A stretch of DNA of 59,865 bases from Bigelowiella natans CCMP2755 (Eukaryota > Protista > Cercozoa), in assembly GCA_000320545.1 (NCBI GenBank), contig ADNK01000579.1, forward strand, positions 1 to 59,865, read 5' to 3'. How positions within the stretch are numbered: position 1 is the first letter of the stretch; each line of letters starts with the position of its first letter. Below are positions 5,167-53,462 of the stretch, piece by piece. Made by a program: the position numbers and the translations under genes. The notes below the pieces were generated by a model. That model was not told where the DNA came from. It saw only the letters and a program-made list of their open reading frames with translations, and did no database searches.

Positions 5167-5568
5167 GATGAGGAGGAATGATTCTCTCCTCTACCACAAA
5201 GAAGGAGGAGGGCAAGAAGCCCTTCGAGTTGTGCAAGCCCGCCAGACAGGCAACTTTAATTTCTCGCAGCCTCGAAAGCGAACGCCTTCCCGGCAAAATA
5301 CATTCGAAGGAGAACACGTGTAGTTCTTCTTTTTTTGCCTGCATTTTCCTGGCCTGATGTCATTATTTCGGGAGCACAAAGTTCTAATAAAAACCTGCTA
5401 GATCTAGTAGTTTGTCAGGAGTACTACTTCCTTCATGTGACATCTTGTTCGAAACACCTTCGCGCCACAATTCCTCCATTGCTTTTTGTGAGGATCAATC
5501 AACGATTTAAGGGGCGCTACCAGGAACAGAACAAGAACAAAACAGATATAACAAGAAATTTGCCCAGC

Positions 5569-14435: not shown

Positions 14436-15146
14436 TTATAGTCGTTGTCAGTGTACAGATAATGTACCCACGAAAAAGCAATAAAGAAACCTGAGATCAT
14501 CGATGCCTCCTCCTGAAATAAATTTTAATAATTATTTCTTTTTAATTTATTCAGAATTTAACCAAAGTGATACAAAACAATCCAAGAGTTACAGCAGTAA
14601 TCGCACAGAGAATCGTTAGACGTAATATAACAACATTAATGATGATGGTCATGATGATTAATGCTACTGTAGTCGCTAAATTAGAAGTTGAACAACACAA
14701 CTTAAATTATGAAAAGAAAAGAAATACTGGTGCTGCCGTTGTAGAATAAATAGTGTTTGCCAGTAGCAGAAGTCGTAGCACTGTCTGTCTTCGATGATGA
14801 CGAATAATGGAAATGTATTTCTAGTGCATGTGATGTGTGTGTTCGTTGATGATGGTGATGATGCTAACAGTGGGAACCAACATTTTTACTGCGCCTGTGC
14901 GTTGTGGGTTCACAATTCACTCGTTCATTGTCCCATCGTTGTGTTTTGCTTCCAGAAAATAAGCACAGAGATGGAGCTGCTGCTGCTGCTGCCGTCGAAT
15001 CTGCAACGACGATATCTTCACCGCTTCCAGCTCCTGCATTATCATCTTCTTCTAGAGGGCGGCCTGACGCCAAGCATTCCTCTTCCTCGTCATCTTCTGG
15101 TATTGTGAGTAGTAGAAGATACCGAGCCATCAAATTAAAAGTGTAA
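5569..15146 (+). CDS. Putative multi-exon gene of unknown function; small exons in microsatellite-rich introns
   Basis: Short complex-sequence segments flanked by AG..GT amid simple repeats, e.g. ~7971 ELKGIHVRSITIDSAESKE, ~8636 AISKGNEGQETIVEKKTMLH, ~12041 CPVEYRRLWIRQFC, ~12890 YPSRHVQKILAYHRWDSRE (UBA-like), ~13415 FSKMGMASSWSEEMYKIVIDIA. A last exon ends at TAA 15146. Frames were not verified end to end, and this could be more than one gene. Confidence 0.35.
6620..14440. repeat. Dense microsatellite field: (TA)n, (TAG/CTA)n, (CAT/GAT)n, (GA)n, (CA)n, (CAA)n, (CCT)n
   Basis: Directly visible runs, mostly ~20-45 nt. The same repertoire fills the introns at 24.4-38.9 kb and 57.5-59.8 kb. 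Confidence 0.95.
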
Positions 15147-16666
15147 TGGCAACTAGGCATTTACAGCAAAGAACGATTGGTGATCATGGCATGAGATGGC
15201 ATGAATTGACGGAACATGTGATTCATACTGACTATTGATAAATTGCAGTTGTAGCGTCAGCTGAGGTGAACCCAACCGAACATAAAGACGAGCGAGCTTC
15301 AGAAGAAGAGAAAAGTCGAGCAAACAATGTCAATCATTAACTCCTGATGATGGACAACGGACAAATTGAATGCAAGGGAAGAAATTGCGAATCGTGTGAG
15401 CTCGATTCACACTGACACAAGGATCAACATCTCACCATGCGTTTGCATGTAAATGCATTTCGATCCTCATCCCAATTTGCATTGCTGATTGGCCACACTG
15501 CCCTACACAACTCTAGAACTAGCTGATGCTGTTCTGATCGATGAATGTGCCAGGACCGCCACACCTAGCTAGACATGTGCGTGTGATGCGAACAAGCACC
15601 GCTTGAGATAGCTGCGGCGCGCAGCTAGCTGCTTGGTGCGCAATTGATTTTGTTTGGAAGGCCACGAGTGCAAGCGTGGTCCGTGCCCAGCGTGTTCCAC
15701 TCATTCAATCGATTGACTCGCCTGTGCATGTGGTGCTAGCGCCCGCTGCCTGTCAAAAATGACAGCTGCACGCTTGCAATCTGCAGGCTAGCAGGTCTGG
15801 CAAGGAATCACGAATGCGAACACCGAATGGAACAATTGCTGTGCGCAGCACAACCATTCTGTTCTAATGTATGAATGGTTGCCAATCGAATGTTTTTTGC
15901 TGCAATTGTTCTTTTCATTCGAATGGTTCAGCATCGATCGAATGCATTTGGCAACATGACTAGATGATTTCAGCGAATGAAGTGCAGCATGCGCGCAGGC
16001 GGCAAGCAATTTTGGTATGCCATTCTGGCATTGCTCGATCCTTTGGTTTTCCCTCACCTTTGTTCCACTCGCTTTTTGCAAACAGTTGGGCAAATGACAC
16101 CATTTGCATTCTGTTCGTTTTCGTATGAGTTTTCAAAGTCACAGTTTCATTCGACTGAACAGTGTCTGTTCGTTGATTGCTAGATTGCACAAGCAACAAT
16201 CACCATTTTCATTCGAATGAACGTGTTTGCAAACGATCACTTCATTGCACCTGTCCATCTCACAATCTAGGAATCGAGCGAGAGAGTTAAGGGGAGCTGT
16301 TCATCATGCCATTCCGACCGCAACTCGTACCGATCGAGAGACAGTGCTTGCGACGTAGATCCATGGTCGTCATCAAGGTTTTAGCTGCATGATCTTAGGC
16401 AGAGCATGATGTACGTGCTGTGCATGAGAACATGCACGGGATCTAATTGCAGCACGTACAGTCATCATCGATGCGAATCATGCATGGAATTTTGTGCATC
16501 ACTTCATGATAAATTCTGGATTGCACAGCGACGGTTTACTTTGCACAATTCTTCAACGTACATTGGCGAAATGATGCAGCTGAAAGTTGAATGATAGGGA
16601 GTTTACTTATCTTGTCAATCATGCCGCATTTTCCAGACATTCTAACGCATCCTACAACTATCTAGA

Positions 16667-18699
16667 CTAAATTGGAGCTCTTCCATCATCCACCGTTTCA
16701 CCAATGGGAGAAGGATCGCAGGCTACTTTAGTGGTTACTTGTTCGAAATCTGGCGAATTAGGTTCTGCTGTGATACCACCAGAAACAGCTATGTCTTCTC
16801 CATCGGCGCCTTTCCCCGCTCGCTCTGCAGACACAAGCTCAATGCCGCCAACTTTCGAGTCTTGGCCAACCCGTCCATCTCCTGGATCGATGCGCTGCAA
16901 TTTATCACTGTGATGAAACTCAACGCAATCTTTGAATATTGTAATGAGGAAGAACCCAGCCACCATAGAAGCCATGCATAATATTCCTCCTACCGCTGTA
17001 CCATCGAGAAGAACGAATAAATTTTCACAGTAATCTCCAACAACAATGTTCTCGTAAGCGTTGCCAATCCATCCGCATGGTGTGTACTCATTTATAGTCG
17101 CAATGAAGCCAACAAAACCTTCGATCTGTAGGGTGGCGTTGTCTATCGCCACGCGAGACGCGTTGACGCTTGAGTCGATGAGATTGGCATCAGTGACAAT
17201 ATTATTGCACGATGTGTTAAACTCAAATTTATAGATTTCCAGCAAGTCTCTCTGAGTCTCCATGTCTCTATTGACACCAGTCAGTTCTGCTACCCGTATT
17301 TTGTTTTCTGATTTAACTGAGGCCGGTGTGTGTGATGGATAGTAGGTTGGATCGTTGGTTGGATTGGCCAATTGGCTTGACGTGTAGACGTATTTTGAAT
17401 GATCTTGAGTGAAGTTGTAGTATCTACCCACCGCAACAAGTGCTATACCAGATTTAGCAGTGTCTATCTGGCTAATAGCCTGGTTGAGTTCGGTCGTAAC
17501 ATTCATGGTGCTCTTTGCTTGCTGTAATTCTGCTATTGTGTCATTTACATCATCAGTATAGTTGAATGCGTTACGCAGCCCAAAGATGTCAATAAAGTTG
17601 GAGTCAGCGCTATAATCGTACAAACCATTGGCTGTAGTACGTTCGGGGCATGTGATAATCTTGTCTATCGTCTCTGCCAGGTTTGCAGTCACGTTATTGA
17701 TCGTAAAGTTATATTTAGAGTTAGTTTTGATTGTGGTCCGCATAGTGATGCAGCCTGCAGATGTGTAAGTACCATCACATCCACATGAATCGTAGACTAT
17801 CATGGAAAGTAACATGAAGATTCCCAAAATGAAGCAAAGCCATGCAAAAAAGAAGAACACCATATAGGCTCCGCAACACATGGGCCAACGTTTTTTACAC
17901 GGTGTGTAACCAATGAACATGATTATAAGGCACACCACAGAGACGGCAAACACAGCTGCCATGACATACTGCCCCCAAGATTCCGTACTAGTAGCAGAGT
18001 CTCTCCCATCTTCGGCATCACTCTCCATGTCTACATTTGCCTTAACCTGCTTTAGTAGAGAATTACCCACGTTTATCAACGACGTGTATATCGAATTCCA
18101 AGACTCATCCACGCTCTTCCTTGTCTCAACATCGAGATCATACGTTATTGTCGGTAAGATATTATTTCGCGCTGTTACGAGAGAATTCTTGGCCTTGACC
18201 AAATATGAGCGAGTGGAATTTGGAGCTATGAGGTCTTGTTGATCTACTGAAGGAATGCTAGCAGATGCGGGGAGAACGTTCGTGAAGTTGCCGCTTCCAT
18301 GGATGGTGTCAAGGTGAGATTTGATGAAAGTTGATTGATTGTATAGGACATACACAGTCGCATTGATCGAGAGGCACTGCGTAGTCGAGTTGTCTATTGC
18401 ATTGATGGTGGAGTTCATAGCTGTAATAATAGTTTGTGTCGTATCAATCAGGTTAATTACAGACTCAAATGTCTGATTCATGTTTGTCAATGAAGTATGT
18501 AGGAATTTTCCGACGGAAGATCCAGAGCACTTAGCAAGGACACCATATGTGCCTCCATTGTCAGCCTTTATCTGCTCAAGGCTTGTTCCTATTATTAGAT
18601 TAGGCCATCGGTGAATTATCACAACTGTTGTTCACACACCCACACACTACACACACACACTACATCGGTGAATTATCACAACTGTTGTTCACACACACA

Positions 18700-20842: not shown

Positions 20843-22185
20843 ATGCCCAAGACTGTGCCGAAGCGCTTGACGAAAGCCGAGTTGAAAAGACTGGATGCTG
20901 CAACCGTGGAGTTTACACGCGATGATGGGTTGGTGAAATCCTCTGTCGTGGACCTCCGCCTCCTTCTCTTCCTCCATCTTTTTTCCCTCCTCTTTCTCCT
21001 TCTCTTTCTCCTCTCTCCTCCTCCATCCACATGACTAAAGCCTCTTATCAACAAACAGCACAACAGACTGGGAGTCGCTTTTCAAGAAATATCCATTTCC
21101 AAACCGGAATAAAGTCCATCTGCAGGTGGGTGACGACATAGACATTTCTCTCCAAGCTGCTTAATGATTGGTTAATGACTGTGCCTCCTCGCCTTAGATG
21201 GAAGGTGAAAAACGCAGAGTCCTTGCTGTGAAGGATAGCGAGAGCCGTAGCTCTCGATCAAAGAGGAAGAGGTCACTCCCAAGTCGCTTAGCAGACGCTC
21301 AGGCAGCAGAAAGAGTTCTAAAACTTGCGAAAAAACAAGCTCGCTTAGAAACTGATGATGGCGGTAGTAATACGAGAAGATCGAAGAGGTCAAGAGTGTC
21401 GCAGAGCTCCCTTGATAGCCTTAGGAATAGTAAACCAGGAAATAAACAACCCAACATTAAGGCAATCTTGAAGGTGGTGACTAATGCCCCGAATTTAATC
21501 GCTATAATACTCCATTTAAATATAATTTATGCATTTAGGCAAATGCAGTTTCCTCAGTTATGAAGAAACAAAGATTGCAAGCTTACAAGCAAATTGGCAA
21601 GGAACAGCCGAAACTCTCATTTGGAAAGGTATCAAGACCAGCAATGTTTTTGTTAACGTTAATTAGAAATCAAATTGTGAAGCAGTACCATTTCTTGAGC
21701 AGACAAAAAGGATAATGCAAAACGTGACATCATCGACGAAGGTCCGTTAGTAAAATGTTTATGTATCATGGAAACGGCAGTTGTAGTCCAACTTTGCGAC
21801 GGCTGAGTTCGCGCCTTTCGCTATTACAGCTTTCAAAGGAGGCTGTCGCAATTGTATCAAAGGCAACGGAAATGTTCCTTTACTTTTTCGCACAGGTAGT
21901 ACGGAAACTCATTTTACAAAGAAAGATTTTAACCTAATCACCAATCTTATTGAAAAGGAAGTGAAACGAGTTGCTGCCAAGAAAATGCTGCAAAGTCCAG
22001 ACTGTGAACGTGCAACAAAGATTAGCGAGCATGCTCACTTTCTACGAGTCGCTTTATTTAACAATTACAGAGTAGTTGCACCCGAAGAAGAAGAGAATAA
22101 CAACAAATCTGAGAAGAAAGAGGGGGAGGACAAAAATGACAAAATGCAAGCTGAGGAGATGGTCACAAACGAAGCCAACAGCTGA
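20843..22185 (+). CDS. Histone-fold protein (CHRAC1/DPB3/NF-YC-like) with long basic N-terminal extension
   Basis: Spliced C-terminal exons read TKRIMQNV..LSKEAVAIVSKATEMFLYFFAQ|EVKRVAAKKMLQSPDCERA..EHAHFL followed by an acidic tail, which is the H2A-type histone-fold pattern. ATG at 20843, stop at 22185. Confidence 0.6.
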
Positions 22186-22999
22186 ATTTGTTACACCTCT
22201 GTGTGCACCGTGTGCTGCTGTGATCGATCTCTTGTATCTGCTGGATCAGTACCCAATGTTTAGATGTTCATCAATGAACAACGCCTGTACGTCGTCACAC
22301 TCGCTACTTTAATTTTATTTTTGCACCGCGTTTAAAAAAGTCAGATCGAAATCATGTCCACAGAAATCTTTATTGACATCCACAATGCTAGAATGGTAAA
22401 CATGCAACTAAGCGACGCTTCACATAGCACCACATGACGTGCGCGTGGTGCCTGTTGTGCACATCTAGACATGGTTGTCGTATAGATGCACATCGTGTGC
22501 GCGTGTCCGTCCAGCAGATGTGCGACAAATAAATGTGCTCTGGCGGACCATGCACACACGCATGGATCAGCTTCGCGTGTTGCACGACGACATCGTGTCG
22601 TACGTACGTACGTGGACAGAACTGCACAGCCGCCGCTGTCTAGCTGTAGCCGCTTCTCTGCCCAGCCACAAAAGGGTGTGACCATTGATAAAAATTGTGA
22701 CACATCACACACCGTTGTTCACACACAATTTGATCATTTGATCACATCCATCTTGCACATGCATATGCACATGACCATGTTTGGGTGCGCGGCACGCTGC
22801 ATGCGAATGAATGACAGAAAGATACTTGCATGAGACCAGTCGCACTCATGCATACTAGCTGTCTTTCTGTTTTCTCAGAAAAATGTGAAGTTCATTTGAA
22901 TTAGTACATGTTGGATTCAACATTTCGGGATGCTGCACTCGAGAGTTCTTGTGATTATATCTACGACATGTGCAGCGCATAATCATCTGTTAATTCTGA

Positions 23000-24735
23000 T
23001 CAAGCTTCAGGATTACGGAAAAAACGACGGTATGCGTAAAAAGCACCAATCCATAAAAGTATATTGCCACTGCCAAGCAAAAGTACTCCTCCCACAACTT
23101 TGAACACTGTCATCACTAAAGGCCTGAGATCCTTAAGTCGTGTGGACTTTGCAGAATCTATCATTGCCTGGAAAATCGGACGTGCAAAAATAGCAACAAT
23201 AATGCGGTCCCATAAGAAAGTGCCGACCAGTGATGCTCCCACCAGACCCATGACTTGCCATCTGAAATGATCATCTGGAAATGGTTCCAAGTGGATGAGG
23301 GTGTTGAGCTGAGGAAAATAGCCCCATGCGCAGGTGGCAACGAGAGTGACGCACAAAAAGATTGAAAGAAACAGAGAATGATTTTCCATGAGTCCATTCA
23401 TCCAAGGTCGTCCTTTATAGTTGACGAATAAGATAGCGATTATCTGGGAGGTTTCAACCAAGAAGATAACTGTATTCATCAGATTTGGGAGGAATGGTTT
23501 CTCCCACATAGACCAAAAATCCCAATCTTCCTCAGCAGCCGCCCCCCCCTCTTCCTGAGCAGCAAGGAGAGCTGCCTCAGCTTCGTCGTCACGTTTATGA
23601 AACTCTACCACTTCCCTTAGCTTTTCCTCTCCCATAGTCGTAGTGGCTAGTGTCACAGCGTAAGACATACAAGCAAGATGAATAGCAGCCTGACCCAACA
23701 TTGACAAGAAAACAGCAGGGTCAAATAGCGATGAAAGAGGCCGAACTTTTGAGAGCGCATCGACTGGTTTGGAATAAGAGAACGATAAGGAAGCTATCAT
23801 GATCAGCCAAGATGATGCCATCATCTGTCGCTGAGAACTTCTTGCCCCCTCCAATGACAGAGCTGCTAGGGTGTAAGCAGTGATAATGCATTCCAGCATC
23901 ATGATTTGCTGCTGTTGGAGGGCTGAAAGCAATGTACAACGTCCTTGCCGAATCAAAGTAACCACATTTTGAACAGAAGGAGCTCGTGAAGTGAAAGGAG
24001 CAGCTACTGAAGCATCACCAGGTCTTACTGTTGGCAGAACGGTATCTTCGGTTGCTTCCGTTGGTTTTTCCTGATCGTACACGTTTCCATACTTTTTTGC
24101 AAGCTTTGATTTCTCCTCCTTGAGCTCGTTGTACATTCTAGACATCGTTGACCTCATAATTGAAAATGTAGCCATCACGCCAACATCTTCTCCTCTATCC
24201 TGTCTTGCCTTGATTTCCTCTTGCATCCATTCCTTCTGTTTACTCATAAGTTCTTTCTGTTTCTGTGAAAATAACTGTTTTTGAAGACGAGAAGCTTCTA
24301 GTGAGCGTTTCTTGAGTTCCTTGGTCATTAGATTCAACGACTCCTCAGCAGATTTCTCTTTACTTTCCACTGCAACTGACCCAGCATTCGTATTGCCATA
24401 CCTTCATATATCAGTAAGAATAACAATAAATTCAAGAAGACCATGATGCTACTTACTGCTGCTAATGGCTTTGTAACGAAGATCAAATATGGTAATATAC
24501 ATGATGATGAATATGATGAATATCATGAGAGTTATCATTATCTCAAAAGCGCAGCAGCAGCTGAATAGTAGCAGTATTAGAAGGCGTTTTGTAAGTAATT
24601 GTAAGAACAAATTAGATGGAGATAATAGCATTGGTAGTTTCTTGCTTCATAGTAGTTTCCATAAGCAAACAAAATCATACAGATATGACGTTGATTGCTT
24701 CTACTATTGTTATTATATCACCGTGGTAGGAGGGC

Positions 24736-39263: not shown

Positions 39264-39639
39264 CGCTCAGTGAGTTTTTCGAATGTGCAGTTTTGCGGTT
39301 CAATCTTATGTCTTGAGGAAATTCAAGCCTAACATTTCACATAGACTCAAAATTTAATTTCAGAATCTGATCTACACCCTTTTCTGCTACATGAAGCGAT
39401 CCCCACCCACCTTCTACGCAGCGGTGAGCAAAGCTCTCGTATCCACAGTCGCAGCAGTTGATACCACTGACGTAATTAGATGATCACCTATTGATAATAC
39501 TGCGACAACGGCATAAACATGTTTGTTTCCATTTTTCACCTATGATTAGCTTTACACATGTGTTCCGAAATACAACTTCCCGGAGCATTGAGACTTAAAA
39601 AATCTGGAAGAAGACAGAACTTGAGATTGTTCTCGCATT

Positions 39640-39757
39640 GATTCCTGGGATCACTTTCTTCGGATCACTTTCCTAGCATTATTTCCTTAGATCATTTCCT
39701 AGAACATTTTGCGGGATTGTTTTTTTTTAGAATCACTTCCTAGGATTGTTTCCTGGG
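39640..39757. repeat. Degenerate ~13-bp tandem repeat (GATYRYTTCCTRG-like) at the edge of the transposon block
   Basis: Units gatcactttcctag / cattatttccttag / atcatttcctag / aatcacttcctag / gattgtttcctgg. Confidence 0.6.
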
Positions 39758-40021
39758 TTGAAAATGATCCCAGCAATTTTGTGCAAGGGCTCAATGTTGG
39801 ACCATGCAAGCGCACACGTCAACCAATTGACGTCAACAAAATCCAGGCCGTCTCCCCCCAGCGGGTGTGAAACGATCCCTCAATTTTCCTTGTGGACACA
39901 TTGGAGAGGGTGTGGATGTGTGAACACACCACGATGATCCTCAAAGAGCCCCTCATTGGAATCACTTGCAATGAATTGAACGAAAAAAACTCACCTTTTG
40001 AAGTTGTGCAAAGAGCTTGAG

Positions 40022-42121
40022 CAGCTCTTTGATGGGATGAGCTGCATCCCAGAAGTTTGGAATGAACTTCAAGCAACAAGTGAACAGCCCAATTGTCCTT
40101 CTCATTGAACTCTCAAACTTTCTTCCAGGCACTGGCGTTTGAAGCTGATCCAGAGCTGTGCACCTCTTGGGATCAGGTTTGTGCGCATTCCCCTCTTTCA
40201 GCAACCCCAATGTTTGCGCTTTCCTTGGAAACACTTGCAACTTCTTTGCACTCAGCTTTGAATTTTTCTCTTCACACTTGCTCAGGTGCTCAGTGAATTC
40301 CAAGCAACCAGCAAGGCAATCAACACCCATGTCAGTCACGTCATCCACGTGCGTCACCGTGTCCTTTGACTCGGAGCACACCTCATCCACTTTCTCACAG
40401 AGTGTTTGTGCTGAGTTTTCGTGACCCATGGGCAACGAGTTCGACGCAAACGCACCCCAGAGGACTGCCATGGCAAACGTTCTTTGTGTCACGATGGTGC
40501 ATGGTGCCTGTCTGTGTCCCCCTTTGGCATCACTGTGCACGTTCCACAGAGAGTTGAGAACTCTCATGAGCGTGACCTCTGTGATGGGTGCAACATTGCA
40601 CTGCAATTTGCACAAGTCATTGAGTTTCTGCATGGCTGCTGCTGCCCTGGGCATCGTCTTTCCTTTGTCCCAAACTGGGAACCCAGGTGAAGCCCACTTT
40701 GCATCCGTGTTGTCCACTTTGCAAAACACATCAGCGTCACACAGTTGCTTGACTGCCTCCTTGAACGTCATCAGCTCATCCGGCAATCGATGAGGTTGCT
40801 GCCTCAATGGCTTCACTCCTGGTTTCAACCGAGGTGACGTGTTGTGCGGTTCACTCCTGAAGCCCCCACAACTGCTGAGCTCCTTTGCGAACACTCTTTG
40901 AAAGCGACACAATGTGAAACGCACGTGCCAGAATTGTTCCTTTGTGTTCATCGTGCTGTCACCGCACTTGATCTCATTTTCGATTCCATCCAGTGGGCTT
41001 GCCATCACAGGACATCTTCCGCAACGTCCTTGTTCGCAACAGCTGCTTGATCCGGAAAGGTGGTTGCCCCTGTGACTTTGGAAACCCCCTTCCTGGCTTC
41101 CTCTTCCGTGATGAATCGATGGCCATTCTCTGCTTTGTGCAGCCTTTGGTCTGGAGCGTCCACCAAGGACTCAAAAGTGGGCAGTGTGGATGACACAGCT
41201 TTCGATCGCAGCCTCACGATCATTGGACACATCGAGCTTGTTTGCATCCCACACTTCTGGTGGTTCCGATGACAGTGATTTCAATTCCGACACGATGCAT
41301 CCCTCCCCTTTTTGACTGCACGGTTGTGATTCCACCTCTTTGTTCAGCACCGTCAGTCTTCGGAGCTTGGGGTCAGGATTTCCGTGGACCGCCATCGAAT
41401 GCAGGTTTTGCACGTCCATCCCTGTTGGGAAATCATGCGCAACCGTGGCCTTTGTTGCTGTTGCCCACACTTTCACTTTGATGCAACTGGCCTTGCTCTT
41501 GGCCTCTCTGAACTTCACTTCAAACGTGGCCTCTCCTGGAGTTTCATTCACTCCCCCATTGAAAGACCTCGTGCATTGTTTCTCAGCTGCGAATGTGAAA
41601 GGAATGCCCAGTTTTTTGAACCTCTGCAACACCGCGACACGTGCACGGAGGCAGGTTGTGAACCACTGTCCACTGACGCCTTTCCTTTGAACACCCCTTT
41701 GGACCCCTCCAAGTGGACCAATGCCTTTCTTCTTCTTCTCAGGGTCGGATCCTCTTCGCAGGGCTTCGACATTGACTCCGCCAACTCAGCCAGATTCACC
41801 GCAGTGAGCTCCAGGGAGAGCTCATCCCAGGCAACTTCTTTCTCCTTCTTTGCGGGGTTGGGATTGGGTTCATCCTTGGCTGTCTCACACTGCACGTCCC
41901 CCGCATTTGTTCCAAGGGATTTTCCTCCATTGGGTTTCCAATCTTTCTTTTCTCCTGGTGGCTCTTTTGCATGCCTGCACTTGCATCTGTCTCCGAATCC
42001 ACAAGTTCCCTTTTCACGAAAGAAGCGACACACGGGTTTTCCCTCGTGCTTCTTGTGACACTCTTTCCCCTTCTTGCATCTTCCCACGAGGTGTTCCGTG
42101 CATGCACTGCTCACCTCCCAT
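40022..42121 (-). mobile_element. Ty3/Gypsy retrotransposon, gag(CCCH)-protease-RT half, degenerate and inverted relative to its 3' half
   Basis: RT motifs RQQPHRLP, WASPGFPV, MQKLN, DAKGGHRQ, LPMG, HVDD, IGLFTCCLKFIPNF (ORF 39962-41008). Protease-like VDSGS (~41660). Two CCCH fingers (ORF 41548-42114). Frameshifted. Confidence 0.9.
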
Positions 42122-42440
42122 CACAGCGGCGCGTTTTGGTGTTGAACTCTGAGTTTTCACACGCGGGTGCAAGAGTTGCACGCATGTTTGACACCACTGC
42201 TTCATGAACGTGATGTTTTTGCACCAAAGTGCAAATCACATTCGTGTGCACATTCACAAGTGTCAAGTGTTTGGGATTTGCAACACTCAAGTGCAAGGTG
42301 TTCATGTTCACAGAGCAAGTGTTGAATTTCACGTGTGACACATCAACTTGACACCATGGTGTGAAGAACCATTCGCAAAAGTGAAATCAAAGTGCAAAGA
42401 CGTGTTGAATTTTGCACTGGAGTGTGAAAAGCCATGCAAA

Positions 42441-43322
42441 TCAACTCTCATCTGGATCCTCTTCATTCTCCTCGTTGCGACTGGCATTGCCAGCATTGGC
42501 CGCCGCTGCCGCGTCTGCAGCCTTCTTCTGCTTCCTTTTGTGGTTCTTGCACCTGTCTGTCATGGTTGCTGCAATTTCCGATGGGAGAAATTTCGTGAAC
42601 GCTGTCTCGTGCATGACATCTGACACCTTCGCAACGTCCTCTGGAAGTCCCTTCAGTCTCATTTTTTTGCCATTCGTGATGTCGAGTTGGGCTCTGATTG
42701 TCTCTTCTTTGATCTTGGACTCCGTGTCAGTCATCAGGGCACAGTGGGTTGTGTTTTCGCTCACTTTTTGTTGAAGCAGTTCACTGCTCATCTTGCTCTT
42801 CAACCACCTTCTTTCAGGAGTGTTTTGTTTTTTGAATCCTTTTGAGAACCAATGCGAGTGACCCGTTCTGAGTGCTGCCGGTTCAATCTTTCCCATCCGT
42901 GCTCTTTTTTTTTTTCGCTCACTGTCGCACTGCTGCTTCGAAAGACGAAATGGTCCAACCCCATCCCCCCAACTGATGCCCATCTGCTTCGACAACTTGC
43001 TGGCGGTGTCGCCATCAAAACAGTCGCACAGTTCAGCCATCTTCAGCTGCTCTGTCACCATGAAATCCATTGCTTTCTCTGCATCCATTGTCCCTCCATC
43101 TTCCAATTCTTTTCGGGTTTTTTCTTCGAGCTCTTCGACAGATGGGAGCGACAACTGCTTCGATGACTCCTTGTCTGGTCTTTGCTTTTTGTCCTTGTTG
43201 TCATCGTTTGCATCTGAATCCTTTCCCTTGGCACCTGCTCCCTTTTTGCCTCCTCCCTCCTTTTTCCTTTTTCTCGAAGGGCTGCTCCTGGTCTTGGTCT
43301 TGCCCATGCCATGCGAGGGCAT
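42441..43322 (-). pseudogene. Second (accessory) ORF of the CACTA-like element, K/E-rich
   Basis: 316-aa ORF 42441-43391 lies inside the TIRs and is divergent from the transposase. No family recognised. Confidence 0.45.
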
Positions 43323-43398
43323 GTGCTGGTGCGAGGGCCTGTGCTGCGTGTGATTTTCACCCTCGTGGTCGATGCCGCTCAAGCTTTTCACACTTCTG

Positions 43399-43590
43399 GG
43401 AAAAAATCAGTGTCATTTGTCACACTTTGGGTGAAATGGAGTTTGTTTTCGGAATTTTTGCTCGTGTGAAAAAAATCATCAGGGGTGCCCGTTGTGTCAC
43501 ACTCTTTTGTGGAAAAAAATCAGTGTCATTTGTCACACTTTGGGTGAAATGGAGTTTGTTTTCGGAACTTTCACTCGTGTGAAAAAAAAC
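43399..43590. repeat. ~110-bp tandem duplication between the two CACTA ORFs
   Basis: gaaaaaatcagtgtcatttgtcacactttgggtgaaatggagtttgttttcggaa...ctcgtgtgaaaaaaa occurs twice. Confidence 0.85.
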
Positions 43591-43971
43591 AGTTTCATTG
43601 TTGGCACATTGGGTGAAATGAATCAAAGGCTTCATCCGCTGAGTGCAAAATGACGTGACGATGTGATGGATTTTTTTTGAGGCTTGCTGTGGATCTGTGG
43701 CACAGTGGTCCGCTGAGGTGATTTCAGATTGACCCGATTCTGCCCGCTGTCATCCGACATCACCGGCACTTTCGCGCCGAAACCTTGCCGAATCAATTTT
43801 TGCAATTGCCAAAAACCGTCAAAAGTTGTTGAGGATGCAAGCAGTGCCCTCCTCCCCGCTCGCCTGTTTCTCTCTTCATGGCTTGATCACCTGACTGTTC
43901 GCATGTGTTCAGGCCGAGGAGAAGAGTCAAGTGCTTTTGTGACACATGCCAAGGGTGAATGGTGAGCGCAA

Positions 43972-46900
43972 GTGCTGAGTGGAGGCACAGGAAGGAAATT
44001 CAAGCCACGGCGCATCTTTCCCAACGGGTGGAGAGCACTGAACATGATGAGCATGATGCGGAGGAGAACACTGATGGTTTGTGACTCACATTTTGATGAC
44101 CATGGACACGATGGCGATGGCGATGGCGAAGCAGGCGATGATGAGGATCATGACAGCGATCATCAGCACAGTGATTCTGAGGATGGTGGTGATGAAGACG
44201 ACCACGAGGTGGATGCCTCCAATGTTCCATTTGGATCTGAACGATGGTGCAAATTGATGATGGAGAACGAATGTGATGAAGACATGATTGGTGATGAAGC
44301 TGTGCTCAGAATGAGAACAGGCAAGAGGGCAATGCAGTGTGTGTTTGTGTGTGTGTGTGTGTGTGCATGCCAGTCAGCATGTCCATTTGTGTGCCAGTTT
44401 CACGCACCCGCCCAATTGTGGGACACACGTGCTCACGTGTGTGTTCTGCACGTGTGTGTTGTTGTGTGCATGTGCAGGCTCGGGATTGTCCGGACAACAT
44501 TGCGGAATTCCACAGAGACGTGCTGAGAGCGAAAATGCCCAGGAAAGATTTGCGATCAATGGTTTTGTCGTTTGAAGAACACATTGGTCCCACGTTGAAC
44601 AACGCAGAGTGTCTTCCAAGCAGCGCTCACCAAGCGAAAAGGATGATCAGAGTGCTGGATGTCGTGAAGGAAGGCAAGTCACTGGTCAACACAGAACCGA
44701 AGAGGTTGGCTGTGTGCCAAGAGGGTTGCGTTGCATTCACTGGAAGGCTTGAGGACAACAGAGCTTGTCCCAACTGCAAGAGTCTGAAGGAAAAAGGGGT
44801 CACGTTGTTCGTGAATGACCTGGGAAAAAGGTTGAGGCAAAATTTGAGTTCCAATGACAGCCATCCACGTGGGTTTGACCCCAATCCACCCTGCGCAGGA
44901 AAGGATGGTGGTGTGGGCACAACGTCAGACTCTGCTGTGTTCCGGCGTGTGATGCGTGATGCGAGAGATTGGGACCAAGCAATTGGCCTCCACAATGACG
45001 GAGCTGCGATCACCACACTCAATGGTCAGAGCTTCACACCCATCGCAGTGGTGTGGCACAACCTTCCACCACACTTGAGGTGGAAAAGAAACTTCATTTT
45101 CACGCACGTGATGTTCGCTGGACACTCCAACAGTTTGAGCGGACAAGCTCGACTGACCATGACAGCGTCAGAGTTGAAGGTGCGCATCAGCGTTTCACTT
45201 CGTTGCCAGCGTGGCACTTGGTGCAATGATTTTGTGTGCTGCCTCGAAGCAGGTTCTGTGGCAGGAGGGCGTTCATGTGAACGAAACGATGGGCAACGTC
45301 AGGGTGAGAGTGACATTCACTTCGTGTGATTGCAGAGCTGATCCTCTCTTCAGTGGCCGAATTCAAGCACCGAGCAAAAGGTGTCGCAAGTGCGTGATGG
45401 TCTTTGTGTTTTTCTCATGTGAGTGGTGTGATGTCATCAATGTTTCTTGCACCAAAGTGCAAAACTGTCCATTTGTGCACCTCATGGTCAAGATCATCCA
45501 TTTTGCACCGTGGTGTGCAATTTTTTGAAACACTTGCACCTTGCATTGACATGAGTGTTTTTTGTCATCAAAGTGCAAACGATGCAAAACTCAACACCAT
45601 GGTGCAACAATGCATTTGCAATGACACTGAATGCATGATCACAATTTGAACGTCACAGAGCGGGAGTGTGCCCAATGTGCGACCGAAAAGGAGAGGCCGA
45701 CGAGAAAGAAGTTGGAACCACGTGTCCTCCGAGAGGAGTCGACCGCCTCTGGAGCCCTGAACATCCGATGCCGCCTTCTGGACTGTCCGTGCCTTGCCCA
45801 GTGCTCAGAACTTTCGCCAACGTGCAGTGTGACCAGCACGTGTGTTGCTGGACACACGGTCTGGCCAACGTGATGGTTGACCTGTTTCGTCTCGCGGAAA
45901 ACATGGGGAACAAAGCCATCAACCCCACTCCTGCCTGGAAAGCAGATCCACACAAAGTTTTGCACTTCGCAAAAGATGCTTGCACATTCCATGGTTCCGA
46001 GTGACTTCTGCGACGGAGAACTCAAGTCTTTCTTCAAGCACAGCAGTGGAAATCACAAACCCAAGATTCGCAAAGGCTGCAAGTTCAGCCACAAGATGGC
46101 TTGTGTCGGTCCTCTGGGGAAGTTTGCCCTTGAGTTCGTCGCACCACCCACTCCCCAACGACAGGTTGCGCTCGACATCATGGACCACACGCAATCCGCA
46201 CTCAGATGGAGTCACACCAGGTGTTGCAGACGTGCAATGCCATGCATGTGCACACACGTGCACACGTGTGCATGCCGCATGCCATGTGTGACATTGCTGT
46301 GTCGCCAATGCCATGCATGCACTGTCCACATGTGACATTGCTGTGTCCATTGAAGGTTGCAGTTGCAGAGAATGGAACGGATTGGAGCTTCACTGGAGAG
46401 GAAGATGGCCCGCACTTTCCCAGACTGCACGCAGACGATGGTGTTTCACGTGGTGCTCAGACATCTCAGCCACTCCATGGCTCATCATGGCCCCATTCAG
46501 CAAACTTGGACCGTGTTTTTGGAAAGACATCTGAGGGTGTTGAAAAATGCAACGCCCTTGATGGGCAGGTCAGTTGTGAGGATCGCTCTGCAAGAATTCA
46601 GGGACAGGATCAAACTGGACAAAGAACGTGTCGATGTCAGCATCCCGACACACAGAGACGACCATCCGACAGGCGTGCGGGAACTTCCAGGGCACAGGTG
46701 GAGACTGGTGCGACCAGCTGCCAGGGTGAGAGATCACCTCAAACACCACGTCACTCACAACAACAGATTCACCGATCAACAGTTCCAAGGAGCAACCTTC
46801 GAGGAAACAGGTGAACTGGAGTTCAAGGGGAGACGACATCGCACCAGGCACAGCGAACTCAGGAGGAATGAGAATGGTGGCAAAACCTGCAACAGCATCG

Positions 46901-47313
46901 TTTTCGTCAAATGGGGTGTCGACGAGTTGCCAGTCATGCGGAGCACCGCTGGTGCCATCAAGTCATTCCACAAGGTCACCATTCAAGGATCATCATCGGA
47001 ATGTTTCGTGTGTGTGCGAACACTCAAGGAGCTTGAACACAAAGGTGTTTTCGGTTGTGCGAAGAAGGTGGACTTGAACCGAAGCCCCACCGTCGCGCAA
47101 AGCTTGGGAGAAGTGGTGGAGATTTCTCAATTGGACCACAGAGCTGCCCCAGTGTTCTTGCCGGTGCCAGAAGAGTTGCACCGCCGCAGGGGGAACAACG
47201 ACGTTTCAGTGAGCCGTGAAGGCCCTGTGCATTGGATGCTCCCATGTTTTTCTTGGTGTTCTCATCACACCTGGTGCAAACGTTTTCTGAACTTTGCACC
47301 GCGGTGTGATTGA
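43972..47313 (+). pseudogene. CACTA-type (TnpD/Transposase_21-like) transposase, intron-containing, mutated
   Basis: VCQEGCVAF..ACPNCK, IGLHNDG, SFTPIAVVWHNLPP, WTHGLANV, HGPIQQTWTVFLERHLRVLK correspond to the CACTA motifs ACxNxC..CPxC, LxxDG, YNLPP, MHxxxNV, GP..W.YPFERY..LK. Confidence 0.8.
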
Positions 47314-47737
47314 ACATGAATGTTCACAATGTGCGCGCGACGATCCGCTGACAGCACGGCGCACGTTTGCGCTCCGTGGTCCATGCGCACGCTGCGTGTT
47401 GTGCTGCCTGCGAGCATTGAGGAAGCACCCCAATGAGCGGACGCAGCGAGAACAGGCGCGCGCGACCGCAGCACAGGCGCGGGCACACGCAGCGTGGATG
47501 CGCATCACACTTGGTGTGAGTTCTGCAAAAGTTTTGCACCACGGTGTGAAATCAAATCAAACTCATGGTGCAAATTGATGCCGTTTTGCACCAAAGTGCA
47601 AAGTGATTTTCACACGAGATCACAATGTTCACACCCCTGGTGCAAGCCAGTGCAAAGTGATGTGCCAATTGAGGTGCAAAGTGAAACACTTTCAGTGCAA
47701 AAGTGCATGAATTTTGCACCGTTTTCTTGCCGCTGTG

Positions 47738-49952
47738 TGATGAGCAAGGAAGGGGCCAAAGCAGAGTGGAAACAACAGCATCAGGATGCGTTCAGTGCCT
47801 TGAAGCAACTTCTCAAAGAGTCGTCCTTGACCACACCCAAGTTCACGGAAACGAGTGTCAAGGCACCTTTCACAGCAGATGGACTCAGATGCGAGTGGTG
47901 TTGCAGGAGCAGGCACATCATCGCAGACGATGGGGGGGAAGGAGAGGTTGATCGCTTGCCACTCTTTCGCATTCTCGACAGTCCAAGTGGGTTGGACCAT
48001 GTCGAGAAAGGAAGTGCACACACCTTCACGGTTGTTTGATGAGTGGGCAACGTGACACTTGGGGGTTTCCCGATGAAGCTGCGAAAAGATTCAAGGTGTG
48101 CAACGTGCTCAGGCAAGCATGGGCAAGGCAAAATGCGAGAACCTTGGACGAGGATGAGTGCAGCTTGCGACCCCTGGATGACAGCAAAACACGAACACCG
48201 TCAGCGAGACTTGCACGTCAATCCAGACACGTTCACGTGTGAATCCAAGGAAGCCAAAACAACTGGCAAGTGTGCGGCTGGAAAGACATTGAAGACCTTG
48301 TTCCCTGACCAGCACGAAGCGGCAGAAGAGTTTCTGAAAGGATGCAAGGAGAGAAGCAAAGATGAAGACCTTGAAGTGCATCCCACCGAGACATTGGCGA
48401 TGGAAAACAAGTGGGGATTGCCCCTTGCTGAAACTGCTGTTTGGGAAGTCAGTGAGATGACACACGAGACCAACTCTCTGGAGGCAAGCATCAAAACAAC
48501 TGCATTGCCGGACAAAGATGCCTTGGAGGAGGAGCAGCGCAGAGACTTTGCGAAGCACTTTGCGGCGCCCTGGAGAGTGCTGAAAGTGAAAACCACGAGT
48601 CACTGAAGTCTCAGCATCGCATCGAAGGCGAACCATTGCACAAGGTGGGATCGTTCGAAGTGGGGGGAGCGGTTCCCTTGCTCACCTGCGTTCCCAAGGA
48701 ACACAGATTGCGTGCACCAAGTGCCCATCACGTCGACAATTTGTCGAATCACCGTGACGCTGCTGACCTGGCTGCGAGGACGTTGAAATCTCACCATTGG
48801 CCGGGACTGAACAGGGAATGCAGAACCCACGCAAAGGGGTGTCAAGTGTGCATCAGAGCCAAGACAAAGTTGAAGAAATTGCCGCACGCTCAAAACAAGT
48901 GCACGTCAATGATGGATGCCATTGGCTTGGATGCCATTGGGCGTGTGTCGGGTGAGAAGCACCACGTTCTTGCGTGTGGCATTTTGTCCATTGGTCACCT
49001 GGTGGCCAAAGCGACGAAGACTCTGAACGCAAGGAAGGCAGTCGATTGGTGACAACGCATGGCGCACCTGGAAGGATCATTGCGGATTGGGGAACGGAGT
49101 TTGTTGACAAGATCTTTGAACACCCAGCCAACAGGCTTCGTCACAGGCACGTCAAAGTGTCTGTGAAGAACTCACAGGGCAACAGTGACTTGGAAAGAAA
49201 GCACAGAGCACACAATGAGGGAGTGCTGTCCCAGCTGACACAAAACGTGGACACGAAAGGCAATTGGGCAGACCACCCAGAGCCCATGGTGTTTGCTGTC
49301 AATGCCTTGACGAACACTCGGGGATGTTCTCCGGCGATGCTCCTGTTTGGGTTCCAGCCTGAACTGTTCCCTGACGTGGAGACAAAACAAACAAGGGGAC
49401 ACACTGCGGAGGATCGCAAAAATGCAAACGAGACAGACGTGCGATTGCGACGTGTGCAAAACGCAAGGGTGCTGTTTGCCACCTTCGAGACGAAGCCAAG
49501 TTCGAGGCCAATTTCAAAAGAAACGCAAGTCTCAAAACGAAACGTGCAGACCACGGTGTGGGGGATCACGTGTGGCTTCACCGAGAGGATGGCAGGAAGA
49601 GCAATCCCGTCACTGCCAAGTGTGACCTGATGAAAACAGGCCCAGTTGTCATGGTCACGGTCAACAGGCGAAGCAATGCCTGCCGGGTGGTGGACGATGA
49701 GACTGGGCACTGTGCTGCCGTGCATGCGAAGCACCTCAGTCCTTTGGGACGCTTCAGACTGTCACCTGAGGTGGAGGATGTGAGCTCGGATGAGGAAAGC
49801 AGTGAATCCTCACCGTCTGAGTCTTCGAGTGGTGGGGAAGAAGACGAGGACGAACAACCTCCCGCACTGGAGGGGAAGAGGAGCAGGAGGCCGGCTCACC
49901 ACGGACCTTGCACATCGTCGTGAGTTCTCACGAACTCAAAAGAAAGGGGGGA
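47738..49952 (+). mobile_element. Ty3/Gypsy retrotransposon, RNase H-integrase half ending in a polypurine tract
   Basis: RT connection EWKQQHQDAFSALKQLL. Integrase zinc-binding H..H..HHWPGL..THAKGCQVC and core IGLD..HGAPGRIIADWGTEF..NSQGNSDLERKHR. PPT aaaagaaagggggga (49938-49952) is followed by TG, the likely 3' LTR start at 49953; the LTR end was not identified. Confidence 0.85.
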
Positions 49953-50268
49953 TGATGCAGTTGTGCATCATCCCAATGTGGTCATGCACGTCGCGCCTGG
50001 TCATGGCGGACGTGGCGTGGCGCGCATGGGCGCCCATTGTCATCGCATTGGCGCCCACATTGGCGCCTGTTTGGCGGCCCGCTTGGCGCCTGTTGGCAGG
50101 GGGCGCTTGGGACGTGACTGGCTTGAGACGTGACCGGTTGTCATTGTCATTGCGACAAGCGGTTGTCGTGATGTTTGCGACAAGCGGTGACAAGTCAGTC
50201 ACCAAAGGAGGCTGCGACAGGAGCAGCAAGTTTGTTGTCATTGTCATTGAACAAGTCGATGCAGAGGG

Positions 50269-50389
50269 ATTGAACGGAGGGGATTGCCTCCGTTCAGTCG
50301 ACACAGAGGGAAGTGAACGGAGGGGATTGCCTCCGCATCAAATTGAGTCTGGGAGACCGACAGAGAGGGAAGTGAACGGAGGGGATTGC
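50269..50389 (+). repeat. Three copies of tgaacggaggggattgc in the putative LTR/downstream region
   Basis: Direct repeats at ~50271, ~50314 and ~50373. Confidence 0.8.
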
Positions 50390-51399
50390 AGTTGGGGAAC
50401 GGCAATCATTCCTCCGTGATTGAGTCAAACGGCGGTGGACCGAAAGGAAGCAGAGGCAGAGATGCGAAGAGGACGAAGAGCAGCAACGACCCTGGGGAGG
50501 TGTCGGTGCGAGGTGGGGAGAGGCAAGACAGCGTCGAGAGGGGTGTTGCCCAATCGGGTGATGTTTCAGACGGAGTTCTGGCATTCGTGATTGTTGAGAC
50601 TGGGCAGGAATCACACCGGCGACGGCGCCGGCAAGTGTTTGGATGATCCTGCATCCTCAGTGTCAATGGGGATTGACACTGGTGCCAATTGTTTGACGTT
50701 TGTTCAATGGTGTTCATCAAAGGTTCAGAATTTCCGTCAATTGTTCCGATGTTGCGCGACGTGTTGCGGGCGCAAGCGCGGCGCAGAGGGACAATTGCAC
50801 TTGTTCTCATTGTTCTCATTGTTCTCAGTTCTCTTGGAAGTTTCAACGAATCACAACTGAAAAAAGCACAGCTTGGAGTTCACGGAGGTGGTGAAACAAG
50901 TTGCACTGTGATTGTGTGTCGTGAGGTGGAACCAAGGGAACGAGCCACCAACGAAGTGAATTGCAAAGGCATGCGATTGGCACCTCTGGACCCACTTGGC
51001 TGTGATGACAATCAATGGAGCAAGTTTGGAAAAAACCACACAGGCACTTGGAAGTGCTGGTGGCAAAGTGGTCAAAATTGAATCAAAGTGTTCAATGGAA
51101 AAGTTTTTGGGGTGTCGATGAGAAATCAGAACGTGGCCAATGAAGTGAGTGATCCTTCGTTTGAACACAACGATCACATCAAAATCACTCACGGTGGTTC
51201 ACGTGACCCCAACGCCCAAAACTGCAAACGATTGTGATGTCAGTCAAGTTGTTGCGTTGAGTGGAATTGCGCGCACGTGTCTGATGCTGATTGGTGGTGG
51301 TGCAAGTCAGCTGGTCAGGCCATGAATTGCAAACACCTTGATCGTGAAACACTGACGATGAAGCAAAAACGCTTGGTGAGCTGTTCTGTCAACCTGAAG

Positions 51400-53170
51400 C
51401 AACACGATGGACAAAACTCCTGCACGTTCAATGCCATGCTGTCATGAACTCTCACGAAAAATCGTTTGAAAAGTCTGGACGTGAAAGTCTCACTTGCAAC
51501 GTGTCGTGTGGTGTTGTTGGGAAAAACAGAAAAGAGAAGACGTCACGTCAACAGGAACAAAAAAGTTTTTCGTTTTGAAAAACACAAGTTGGGGCTGACC
51601 GTTCACGATGGCGTGCACGACTTGGTTGACAAGTTTGCACCTGAAAAGGTGCAACAAAAAGGTTCATCCACGAAACGCGGATTTGCGGTTCACAACAATC
51701 GTGCTTCACACGTCGACGACAGTGCAACTCAATGGCACACCGCTGGGACAAAATTGGACAAAATCGCACTCCTGCGACATCCGCGCCAAGTTGTTTTGTT
51801 CAGGTGAAATTGCCTCATTTCGTTCAAAATCAATTTTTCGTTCTTTGATTTGGACACGAATTCCAGTCATCAAAATCTTGAAAATTGAATTTCTCCAAAA
51901 CTGGACCATTGCGGCACTCATGGCCAGTGCAGTCATGTGCAGCTTCGCATGCTGCTCCCTGCTAGCCTGTGATGTGTTGCACGAATGCTTGGCGAGCACT
52001 TTGACCTCCCGGTGCACCCCTGCGTGGGGGCAAGTTGCCACATGCTCGACACACGTTTGCTCAATGACAAAATCAAAGAACTGGAGCAGAGAAAAAGGAA
52101 GCAGCGAACAATGCAACAAGTGTTCATTGCAAGTCCACGACAAGTGCAAGTTTGGAACAACAAACCAAGAAAAAAGCAATTGTTTCAAGGCTGTCAAAAA
52201 CCTCAACGTCGTGGAATCCTGTGTCCATCATCAGCAATGACATCGCACCTCACATCAAAACGGTCAATGGTGAATGGATCAAACACTTTCATCGTGGGGA
52301 CGTGAGAGGTTTGCCAATTGAAACGCTTGATGTTCACAAGTGTGAACCCAAAGTTTTCTTTCAGCACGACAGAACACTGTCATTGTCGTTCACAATTGGC
52401 AATTGGCATTGTGTCACGTCTCATCCAGGTTGCAACAGCACGAACGACATTGTTGCTTGCGATCGTGAGTGAAAACAACCGTGAGAAACTCACAAAAACA
52501 AGTGATGAACTTCGTCAAAAAGTTGTCAAAAAAGAACGCACACAAGCGTTTTCAATGATGAAGCCTTGAGAACGAACGAAGTGAACACATCCTGAACGCG
52601 CTGCTGTTGGTGAAGTGAACGATGACACTGTTGGCAATGGCATTGACATCAATGAACGTCAGCGCTGGGCTTCAAAATCAACTTCCAAAGTTCCAGTGTT
52701 TCGAGTGTTTTGATGACTGTGTCAACTGTGACAATCACATCATCGAGGCGTGGGATCTCACAACGTGCGTTGCAATGAGTTTGAATTGCGGTGAAGCTCA
52801 CAGCAATCTTGGAACGTTCACGTTGTCCCGAGGACAATGTGAAGAAGCAAACGCCACGTGTGACACGTGGTGCACACGTCTTCGTTCATGTCAAAGACAC
52901 GAATCACTTCTTCAAATGCGAACACCATGCCAACAGCTCAGATTGCGGATGAGCAATTTGATGCCATCATGAATCGAAACTGTGCGAGACGACACTGCTG
53001 ACTCAAGCTGAAAAAGAAATGCGGACCGCTGCGCACACTGCACGACATCGACGACAAAACACAGGTGCTTTCAAATGCATGAACACGTCATTGCAGAGAC
53101 AAATGGACACAACACGAGCGCTGCAGCCGCTGTTTTGCATGGCTGCATTGGGATGACCATTGAAAAGATT
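51400..53170 (+). pseudogene. TpA-stripped coding remnants, possibly family-B DNA polymerase of a Polinton/PLV-like element
   Basis: Frameshifted protein-like ORFs. At ~52640 GIDINE..WA..SKVPVF / FDDCVNCDNHIIEAW resembles a polB motif A (DxNxxY) region once His/Cys are read as Tyr. Identification is from memory of the pattern only. Confidence 0.3.
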
Positions 53171-53462
53171 TGATTACTTCATCACATCCGTCTCACAAAC
53201 CATGTGAGCTTGTGTCTTCCATGACACTATCTCCTCGGGTGACATCTGGAAATTTTTCGGTGTCGAAACGGAGCCGAAAGCACCCCTTGATTGTCCCACC
53301 TCCTCACTAAGAGAAAATTTTCTCCCTGGTACACACTTGTGTAGCACATGTTTGTGACATTTCTCCCTGTCCACAATGCAAGCGATCCGCAGCTTGTTTT
53401 CAGAATCCTTGCTAAATTGGAAGCAAACATTCACATTAGGGAAAGCTTGCAATCTGGTGGTT

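Follow-up and report, generated by a model that had tools for sequence, protein, structure and literature searches.

A TA-free transposon nest in Bigelowiella natans and the probable footprint of TpA-specific hypermutation in genomic DNA

How a DNA transposon, together with its coding, intronic and simple-repeat sequence, can come to lack the dinucleotide TA is the question raised by a 59,865-nucleotide stretch of the Bigelowiella natans CCMP2755 genome (assembly GCA_000320545.1, contig ADNK01000579.1, positions 1 to 59,865 of the forward strand; hereafter the window). The locus very probably carries the saturated footprint of a TpA-specific hypermutation that acted on double-stranded genomic DNA in place. 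An earlier note, made from the sequence alone, had described a replacement of TA by CA or TG between 44300 and 46560, and every string that it quoted lies where it was placed (cac-aac-ctt-cca-cca, encoding HNLPP, at 45057-45071; LERHL at ~46521-46535; GCAAG at 44321; GTGCG at 45180; and a purine-pyrimidine run at 46241-46274). These 2261 bases contain 0 TA where base composition predicts 131, and CA and TG together account for 22% of their dinucleotides vs 14% in the TA-normal part of the window. In fact, the void extends far beyond the stretch that had been noted, from 39742 to 53174 (13,433 bases); a single TA is present, at 51963, where 806 would be expected, and the GC content is 0.51 vs 0.39 outside the block. 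In the TA-normal part of the window, 3658 TA occur over 44 kb. In 13 successive 1-kb intervals of the block, the observed/expected ratio of TA is 0-0.01 and that of CA/TG 1.46-1.79 (at least 1.52 in ten of the 13, six of them consecutive at 44001-49001), and chance is excluded as the source of the void. The borders are sharp, with TA density normal through 39741 and normal again from 53175. The left border falls inside a short tandem motif (39600-39760), the units of which read ttcctag up to 39741 and ttcctgg immediately beyond, the passage from unconverted to converted sequence falling within ~15 bases.

The direction of the change can be read from relatives that still bear TA. The genome to which the window belongs (G000, 91.4 Mb in 3736 contigs) was searched for other copies, and in the stretches that could be aligned with two TA-bearing relatives, L027 on contig C2494 and L031 on contig C2150, 113 TA of the relatives face 51 CA, 44 TG and 4 CG in the window; another tally for TA-bearing relatives stands at 45 CA, 39 TG and 4 CG. 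Comparison among TA-free copies shows that each was converted independently. The 5.6-kb transposon within the block has a single sister copy, on contig C218, and the two differ by 276 mismatches, 160 of which are contained in 80 double swaps of CA for TG or the reverse, the rest being mostly transitions; opposite the four TA that survive in the C218 copy, the window has CA three times and TT once. Similarly, in the alignment of a 13-copy family from the block, 53 dinucleotide columns mix CA and TG in a ratio of 294:283, with 9 CG and 6 surviving TA besides, and every other pair of doubly different dinucleotides fills two columns at most. CA and TG are also balanced within every copy of this family. 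The mixed columns and the strand balance together imply a TA-bearing ancestor, conversion of each copy after its insertion, and action on both DNA strands. The earlier note had held that the process is DNA-level with no RNA step, on the ground that a cut-and-paste element has no RNA intermediate, and this conclusion gains a stronger basis from copies that resolved the same ancestral TA independently and symmetrically.

Two other origins of the block lose their footing. A lack of TA that is native (a TA-poor donor) or selected (for example, by avoidance of a TA-cutting nuclease) has nothing specific to recommend it beyond the mild under-representation of TA in many genomes, and it is scarcely credible, since a site that reads CA in one copy but TG in the next must descend from TA and have changed separately in each; in addition, dead, fragmented and nested elements and a microsatellite have been hit alike, and TA-bearing relatives exist. 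An artefact of sequencing or assembly, in favour of which nothing was found, can for practical purposes be set aside, as dozens of TA-free copies lie on separate contigs with patterns of their own and sharp junctions to TA-normal flanks, and the effect has been seen independently by Illumina resequencing (Mettrop et al., 2026, bioRxiv 10.64898/2026.01.13.699255).

The context of the changes is equally narrow. With the ancestor inferred from the 13-copy alignment, adenines preceded by T show A>G at a rate of 0.46-0.52 each, equivalent to roughly one hit for every TA step, and the rate falls to 0.049 in CAT, 0.025 in AAT and ~0.01 or less elsewhere, while C>T and all other changes stay at a background of ~0.01. 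No preference for a 3' neighbour that would tell which strand was hit was seen in this family (0.46-0.53). CG makes up 1.5-4.5% of the TA-derived sites, and CAT is the best off-target context, both of which fit the earlier suggestion that CG units record double hits on one TpA. The two copies of the 5.6-kb element also differ by 14 double swaps of AC and GT, which may reflect a minor ApT target or be by-products of CG-containing TA tracts; the rate for AAT in the family analysis is just 0.025.

The 5.6-kb element occupies 42122-47737 on the plus strand, contains 0 TA and is 95% identical to its one other copy (G000:C218:24555-30180). Homology of the two copies begins exactly at a left terminal inverted repeat (TIR), CACAGCGGC, at 42122-42130 on the plus strand and stops exactly at the right TIR, the reverse complement of CACAGCGGC, at 47729-47737 on the minus strand, and the 9-bp TIRs are perfect. 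A 20-mer (family D3) occurs five times in the element, mostly near its ends (42216, 45444, 45560, 47531 and 47583). Homology in phmmer and tblastn places a transposase exon, containing HNLPP and no tyrosine codon, at 44481-45179 (plus strand). In a library of 1.8 billion proteins, phmmer matched the frame 44481-45326 to P0002 (3e-53), P0008 (1.8e-5) and P0009 (5.4e-4), the last two of which score 42.6 and 24.6 bits, respectively, with PF02992 Transposase_21 (tnp2; cut-off 28.6); the window's transposase frame itself has no Pfam match at E ≤ 0.1. The exon is followed by a 73-nt intron, GTGCG...CAG (45180-45252, plus strand), and by a next exon (45253-45380, plus strand) that reads SCDCRADP where relatives have S(A/C)DYRADP. 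Farther downstream, an open frame containing ERHL (46357-47313, plus strand) probably represents the C-terminal part of the transposase, with a weak match to DUF4218 (PF13960, 16.4 bits, below the cut-off), and the clusters nearest to it in the Atlas, fungal DUF6830/DUF4218 ones, provide a lead only. Among ten large open frames of the block, the Pfam search returned this sub-threshold DUF4218 match alone, the exons having been searched separately. The transposase falls below all Pfam thresholds because tyrosine and other TA-containing codons have been rewritten, and since TAA and TAG cannot occur in the block, long open frames there are not evidence of genes.

By its predicted transposase, the element is a cut-and-paste DNA transposon of the tnp2/CACTA kind. 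It resembles CACTA/EnSpm (CMC) elements in TIRs that start with CAC, in subterminal repeated motifs, in a predicted multi-exon transposase apparently related to Transposase_21 and in a DUF4218-like tail. It differs from them in its termini, which read CACAG rather than CACTA or CACTG (conversion of an original CACTA would have left CACCA or CACTG). No target-site duplication (3 bp in CACTA) is recognisable at the flanks of either copy; these flanks, which are CAT/TGA for the window's element and CAC/ACT for its C218 copy, are themselves mutated. The nearest transposase relative outside the genome, a 1055-base contig (L036) of Logan run SRR14574966, is 45% identical and contains 74 TA vs 77 expected. 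It carries a TA-rich intron of 60 nt at the same position, after SELK.

A transposon of this kind bears directly on ADAR-type hyperediting, in which element transcripts would be edited as RNA and the changes fixed by reverse transcription and re-insertion. A>G with a preference for a 5' U is the ADAR signature, as cited in the discussion of the preprint (Mettrop et al., 2026), and is the attraction of this explanation, which is nevertheless highly improbable. With TIRs at its ends and a transposase of tnp2 type, the element does not move through RNA, and it continued to mutate after copying; both strands are converted equally in every copy, at ~100% of TA sites, and the apparently unique spacer and the entire nest are covered whatever the orientation of the elements. 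Similarly, the changes reported in the preprint arose de novo in integrated DNA (Mettrop et al., 2026).

As the earlier note had proposed, the signature spans the cut-and-paste transposon from end to end, including its TIRs, its exons, an intron confirmed by homology and a former (TA)n tract. The individual examples on which that proposal had been built fared less evenly, and two of the four find no support. Plant CACTA transposases read YNLPP, and HNLPP had been taken as its converted form; the C218 copy has the same CAC, and the nearest relatives read Q, N, R or L before NLPP, so an ancestral Y is conjectural here. The derivation of ERHL from ERYL is likewise conjectural, as the C218 copy carries the same CAT (H) and no ancestral state can be read. 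Tyrosine has instead been lost at three other codons: F-Y-R of P0002 and P0004 is F-H-R (cac) in the window, D-Y-R-A-D-P of P0003 (tat in L036) is D-C-R-A-D-P (tgc), and L-Y-R of relatives faces P-R(cgt)-G. The 328-residue transposase frame contains 0 tyrosine, 17 histidine and 13 cysteine residues.

The intronic examples divide in the same way. GTGCG at 45180, suggested to be a mutated GTAAG donor, is a real intron start: in tblastn, P0003 aligns to 45179 and P0006 to 45176, and both resume in a shifted frame, at 45256 and 45292, which together with the position of the L036 intron supports the 73-nt intron. An ancestral TA in this donor may or may not have existed, as the C218 copy also reads GTGCG and the donor of L036, GTCAGT, contains no TA. 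GCAAG at 44321, the other proposed former GTAAG donor, is identical in C218 and out of frame with the acceptor at 44477. This acceptor, the sole one nearby, would give a 157-nt intron that does not join the two frames, and the donor was rejected. The (TG)n at 44346-44369 is not a decayed (TA)n but an ordinary microsatellite, of which many like it occur across the genome. The purine-pyrimidine run at 46241-46274, which the note had regarded as a decayed (TA)n tract, is best read as a scrambled former (TA)17 (strand not assigned), with 8 CA, 7 TG and 2 CG among 17 in-register units. It is the only mixed run in the block, and its counterpart in C218 shows CA and TG exchanged in register; 14 pure (TA)12-24 tracts occur in the TA-normal 46 kb of the window and none in the block.

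The process that would account for these observations can be outlined as follows. Where mobile elements lie in a silenced nest, one of the two adenines of every 5'-TA-3' step would undergo A>G, to be read on the plus strand as TG or CA with equal odds, and one hit would abolish the palindromic target on both strands, with the result that a site is normally converted once. Infrequent second hits, best in the CAT context, would yield CG. Coding content would be ignored, with TIR-flanked non-coding DNA, exons, introns and the (TA)n tract all rewritten and tyrosine codons (TAY) turned into histidine (CAY), cysteine (TGY) or arginine (CGY), and conversion would halt within a few bases of the nest edge. 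Of this outline, the comparisons themselves show the direction, context and strand symmetry of the change, its independence in each copy and the sharp borders, and the chemistry and the targeting are inferred. The chemistry is probably deamination of adenine to hypoxanthine by a deaminase that works on DNA, since one A>I event, whichever strand it strikes, yields precisely TG or CA and leaves neither strand with a target. The genome's only ADAR/ADAT1-type A_deamin (PF02137) gene that was found lies on contig C2414 of the same genome (G000:C2414, ~14.1-15.8 kb; L042-L044). It has no double-stranded-RNA-binding domain in the exon examined and may be among the five deaminases screened in the preprint.

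A thymine-directed chemistry would leave the same footprint through a different class of enzyme. In this alternative, the T of TpA in silenced DNA would be modified (for example, to hydroxymethyl-uracil or a J-type base) or damaged and would mispair with G, making T>C the primary event. Dinoflagellates replace T with 5-hydroxymethyluracil preferentially at TpA, and T>C and A>G cannot be told apart in any comparison of a palindromic target; the off-target change CAT>CGT is likewise compatible with adenine or thymine chemistry. We know of no such thymine modification in chlorarachniophytes, the genome has the ADAR/ADAT1-type domain gene, and the preprint finds a plausible ADAT2/3 pair (Mettrop et al., 2026), which together make thymine chemistry an unlikely explanation.

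The history of the 5.6-kb element can also be estimated. Its excess of CA and TG indicates ~330 former TA sites, and with unbiased resolution the 80 discordant sites mean ~160 conversions after the two copies separated, which implies that about half of the sites were converted earlier. The element would then have been copied from TIR to TIR to a second locus with about half of its TA sites already gone, and the remainder would have been converted separately in each copy. Several points weigh against this account of TpA-specific hypermutation in place. The estimate that half of the sites were converted first takes an ancestral TA density of ~6% as given, and the palindromic target makes A>G on one strand indistinguishable from T>C on the other. 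The 5.6-kb element also has no TA-bearing copy in the genome, and its ancestral TA is deduced only from sites where CA and TG disagree between it and its single sister copy, and from three tyrosine columns in distant relatives. A search of the genome with the PF02992 and PF13960 profiles gave no intact TA-bearing CACTA-like copy, and its few matches (L033 and L034) are TA-free themselves.

The block as a whole is a nest of at least six unrelated repeat families and 275 apparently unique bases, all TA-free, and other copies of its repeats on ~20 contigs are nearly all TA-free too, with sharp edges to TA-normal flanks. The first 275 bases (39742-40016, no strand assigned) are either unique or degraded beyond recognition and have no other genome copy; outside the window, the search of the genome gave just a 45-base match at 39964-40008 and an 83-base match starting at ~40017, where the next repeat begins. 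Repeat family A (40017-42121, no strand assigned), which is TA-free here and in copies on C1678, C2793 and C236, precedes the 5.6-kb transposon, and repeat family B (47745-50800, no strand assigned) follows it, the 3' part of the latter (49956-50800, ~850 bases) being present in at least 13 copies, all TA-free. On contig C1678 (G000:C1678:54882-60176), families A and B adjoin each other in inverted relative orientation compared with the window; because of this inverted order, C1678 is not a simple empty site for the 5.6-kb element. Next in the block is a helicase-encoding element in two fragments on the plus strand, 51001-51647 (0 TA vs 43 in L027) and 52056-52811 (where 57 TA in L027 face 25 TG, 25 CA and 1 CG). 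The fragments are split by a nested insertion (51706-52056, no strand assigned) that holds the block's single TA (51963) and whose copy on C2150 (L031) has 13 TA, facing 6 CA and 5 TG in the window. L027 (G000:C2494:42000-50000) is a distant TA-bearing relative of the two helicase fragments, with 65-69% DNA identity. Its minus-strand frame at 1502-5323 encodes an intact protein of 1273 aa with AAA_30, Viral_helicase1 and UvrD_C_2 domains, and its TA content is normal. The nest ends in the 3' tail of an abundant 5'-truncated repeat (52803-53197, no strand assigned) with at least 45 copies, which end at 53195-53197 and vary in their starts, and the TA-free block stops 22 bases before the end of this high-copy tail.

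What marks such a nest for conversion is less clear than the conversion itself. Repeat homology alone is unlikely to be the targeting cue, because a single-copy viral insert is hit in the preprint (Mettrop et al., 2026), the apparently unique bases of the block are converted, and the helicase paralogue L027 and the C2150 copy are spared. It is conceivable, at somewhat less than even odds, that the process is aimed not at repeats or viruses as such but at a silent domain that is defined by chromatin or small RNA and has edges sharp to a few bases. This would fit the conversion of everything within the domain, including the apparently unique spacer, the spread of conversion into the subtelomere and the innermost telomere units at 300-600, and the sparing of intact TA-bearing paralogues elsewhere, and it would also fit the mobilisation of the 5.6-kb element from TIR to TIR with half of its TA sites gone. 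If it is true, TA-free blocks would permanently record where heterochromatin once lay in the alga, in a form legible from sequence, and the CA/TG discordance between copies would be a clock that dates transposition relative to silencing.

Other parts of the window are affected to differing degrees. A telomere array of (CCCTAA)n occupies positions 1-465, and its inner units decay to CCCTGA and CCCCAA (CCCTAA/CCCTGA/CCCCAA counts of 18/4/1 at 301-450 and 1/3/2 at 451-600), such that the TpA process seems, as far as these repeat units indicate, to extend into the innermost part of the array. A second TA-free block is formed by the subtelomere next to it (466-1476), where 1 TA occurs and the CA+TG rho is 1.53. 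In addition, 15001-16500 and 22001-24000 are half-depleted, with rho_TA of 0.32-0.60 and CA+TG rho up to 1.74, and resemble the actively hypermutating giant-virus insert (rho 0.46). These stretches adjoin or overlap large frames without Pfam matches, at 16667-18622 (651 aa) and 23000-24370 (456 aa), and they may be targets still under conversion or may reflect coding bias.

The phenomenon itself has already been described for B. natans, and its discovery belongs to that work. In mutation-accumulation lines, two viral inserts, one from a giant virus and one from a virophage, took 231 of 302 mutations; with a single exception these were A>G or T>C, and every such GC-biased change was at TpA, giving TpG or CpA (Mettrop et al., 2026). 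Illumina resequencing showed that the changes arose de novo in integrated DNA, and the genome was found to contain 124 clusters of windows poor in TpA and rich in CpA+TpG (Mettrop et al., 2026). In the same study, DDE and reverse-transcriptase domains were enriched in TpA-poor genes, transposable elements were named a potential target, and an ADAT2/ADAT3 pair was put forward as the candidate enzyme; the preprint contains no family alignments and is silent on DNA transposons, introns and microsatellites (Mettrop et al., 2026). Around the one capsid gene of nucleocytoplasmic large DNA viruses (NCLDV) in the genome, 40 kb have TA at 3.43% of dinucleotides and a rho of 0.46, compared with 3.3% and 0.45 in the preprint. 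The process seen there and the one recorded in the window share the same change (TpA to TpG or CpA only), the same long-term footprint (a shortage of TpA and an excess of CpA+TpG, in blocks) and a target of foreign or mobile DNA, here a nest of at least six families with a tnp2-like transposon, helicase fragments and a 5'-truncated tail. They differ in extent, the viral inserts of the preprint being partly depleted (rho 0.45) or not depleted at all, whereas the transposon nest is fully converted.

What the window adds is the proof from paralogues for transposons, including a cut-and-paste element, together with the saturation of the footprint, the sharpness of its border and evidence for an element that moved when about half converted. 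Also new relative to the preprint are the independent resolution of the same site across copies, the strand symmetry within copies and the weak off-target context of CAT and AAT. It thereby supplies the transposon evidence that the preprint calls missing: copies converted separately, symmetrically and completely, in an element to which an RNA route is unavailable. Practical handles follow as well: CA/TG discordance can serve as a relative clock, and TA-free blocks chart the domains that were targeted. Annotation of such blocks calls for caution, since with TGA as the only stop left, long frames turn up in every one of the six reading frames, and the loss of tyrosine and other TA-containing codons defeats domain models.

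A GC-raising, TpA-specific DNA mutator directed against invading DNA would be the mirror image of fungal repeat-induced point mutation (RIP). To our knowledge, very few defences that edit the genome heritably have been described other than in fungi and animals, and this would be one of them. RIP, as in Neurospora and other fungi, likewise makes dinucleotide-specific transitions at the DNA level, riddling and inactivating each copy of a mobile element separately. The chemistry is reversed, however: RIP changes C to T at CpA and creates TpA, whereas in the window C>T stays at background (~0.01), TpA is destroyed and GC is raised. RIP also requires duplicated sequence and a premeiotic stage, whereas the single-copy viral insert of the preprint was hit in an alga propagated vegetatively (Mettrop et al., 2026); the 275 TA-free bases at 39742-40016 without another copy may point the same way as regards duplication, but could be an old, unrecognisable repeat. 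The hyperediting of repeat-derived double-stranded RNA by animal ADAR shares the A>G change and the preference for a 5' U or T. ADAR acts on RNA, whereas the changes described here lie in genomic DNA, are near-absolute in their specificity for TA, affect both strands equally and are heritable.

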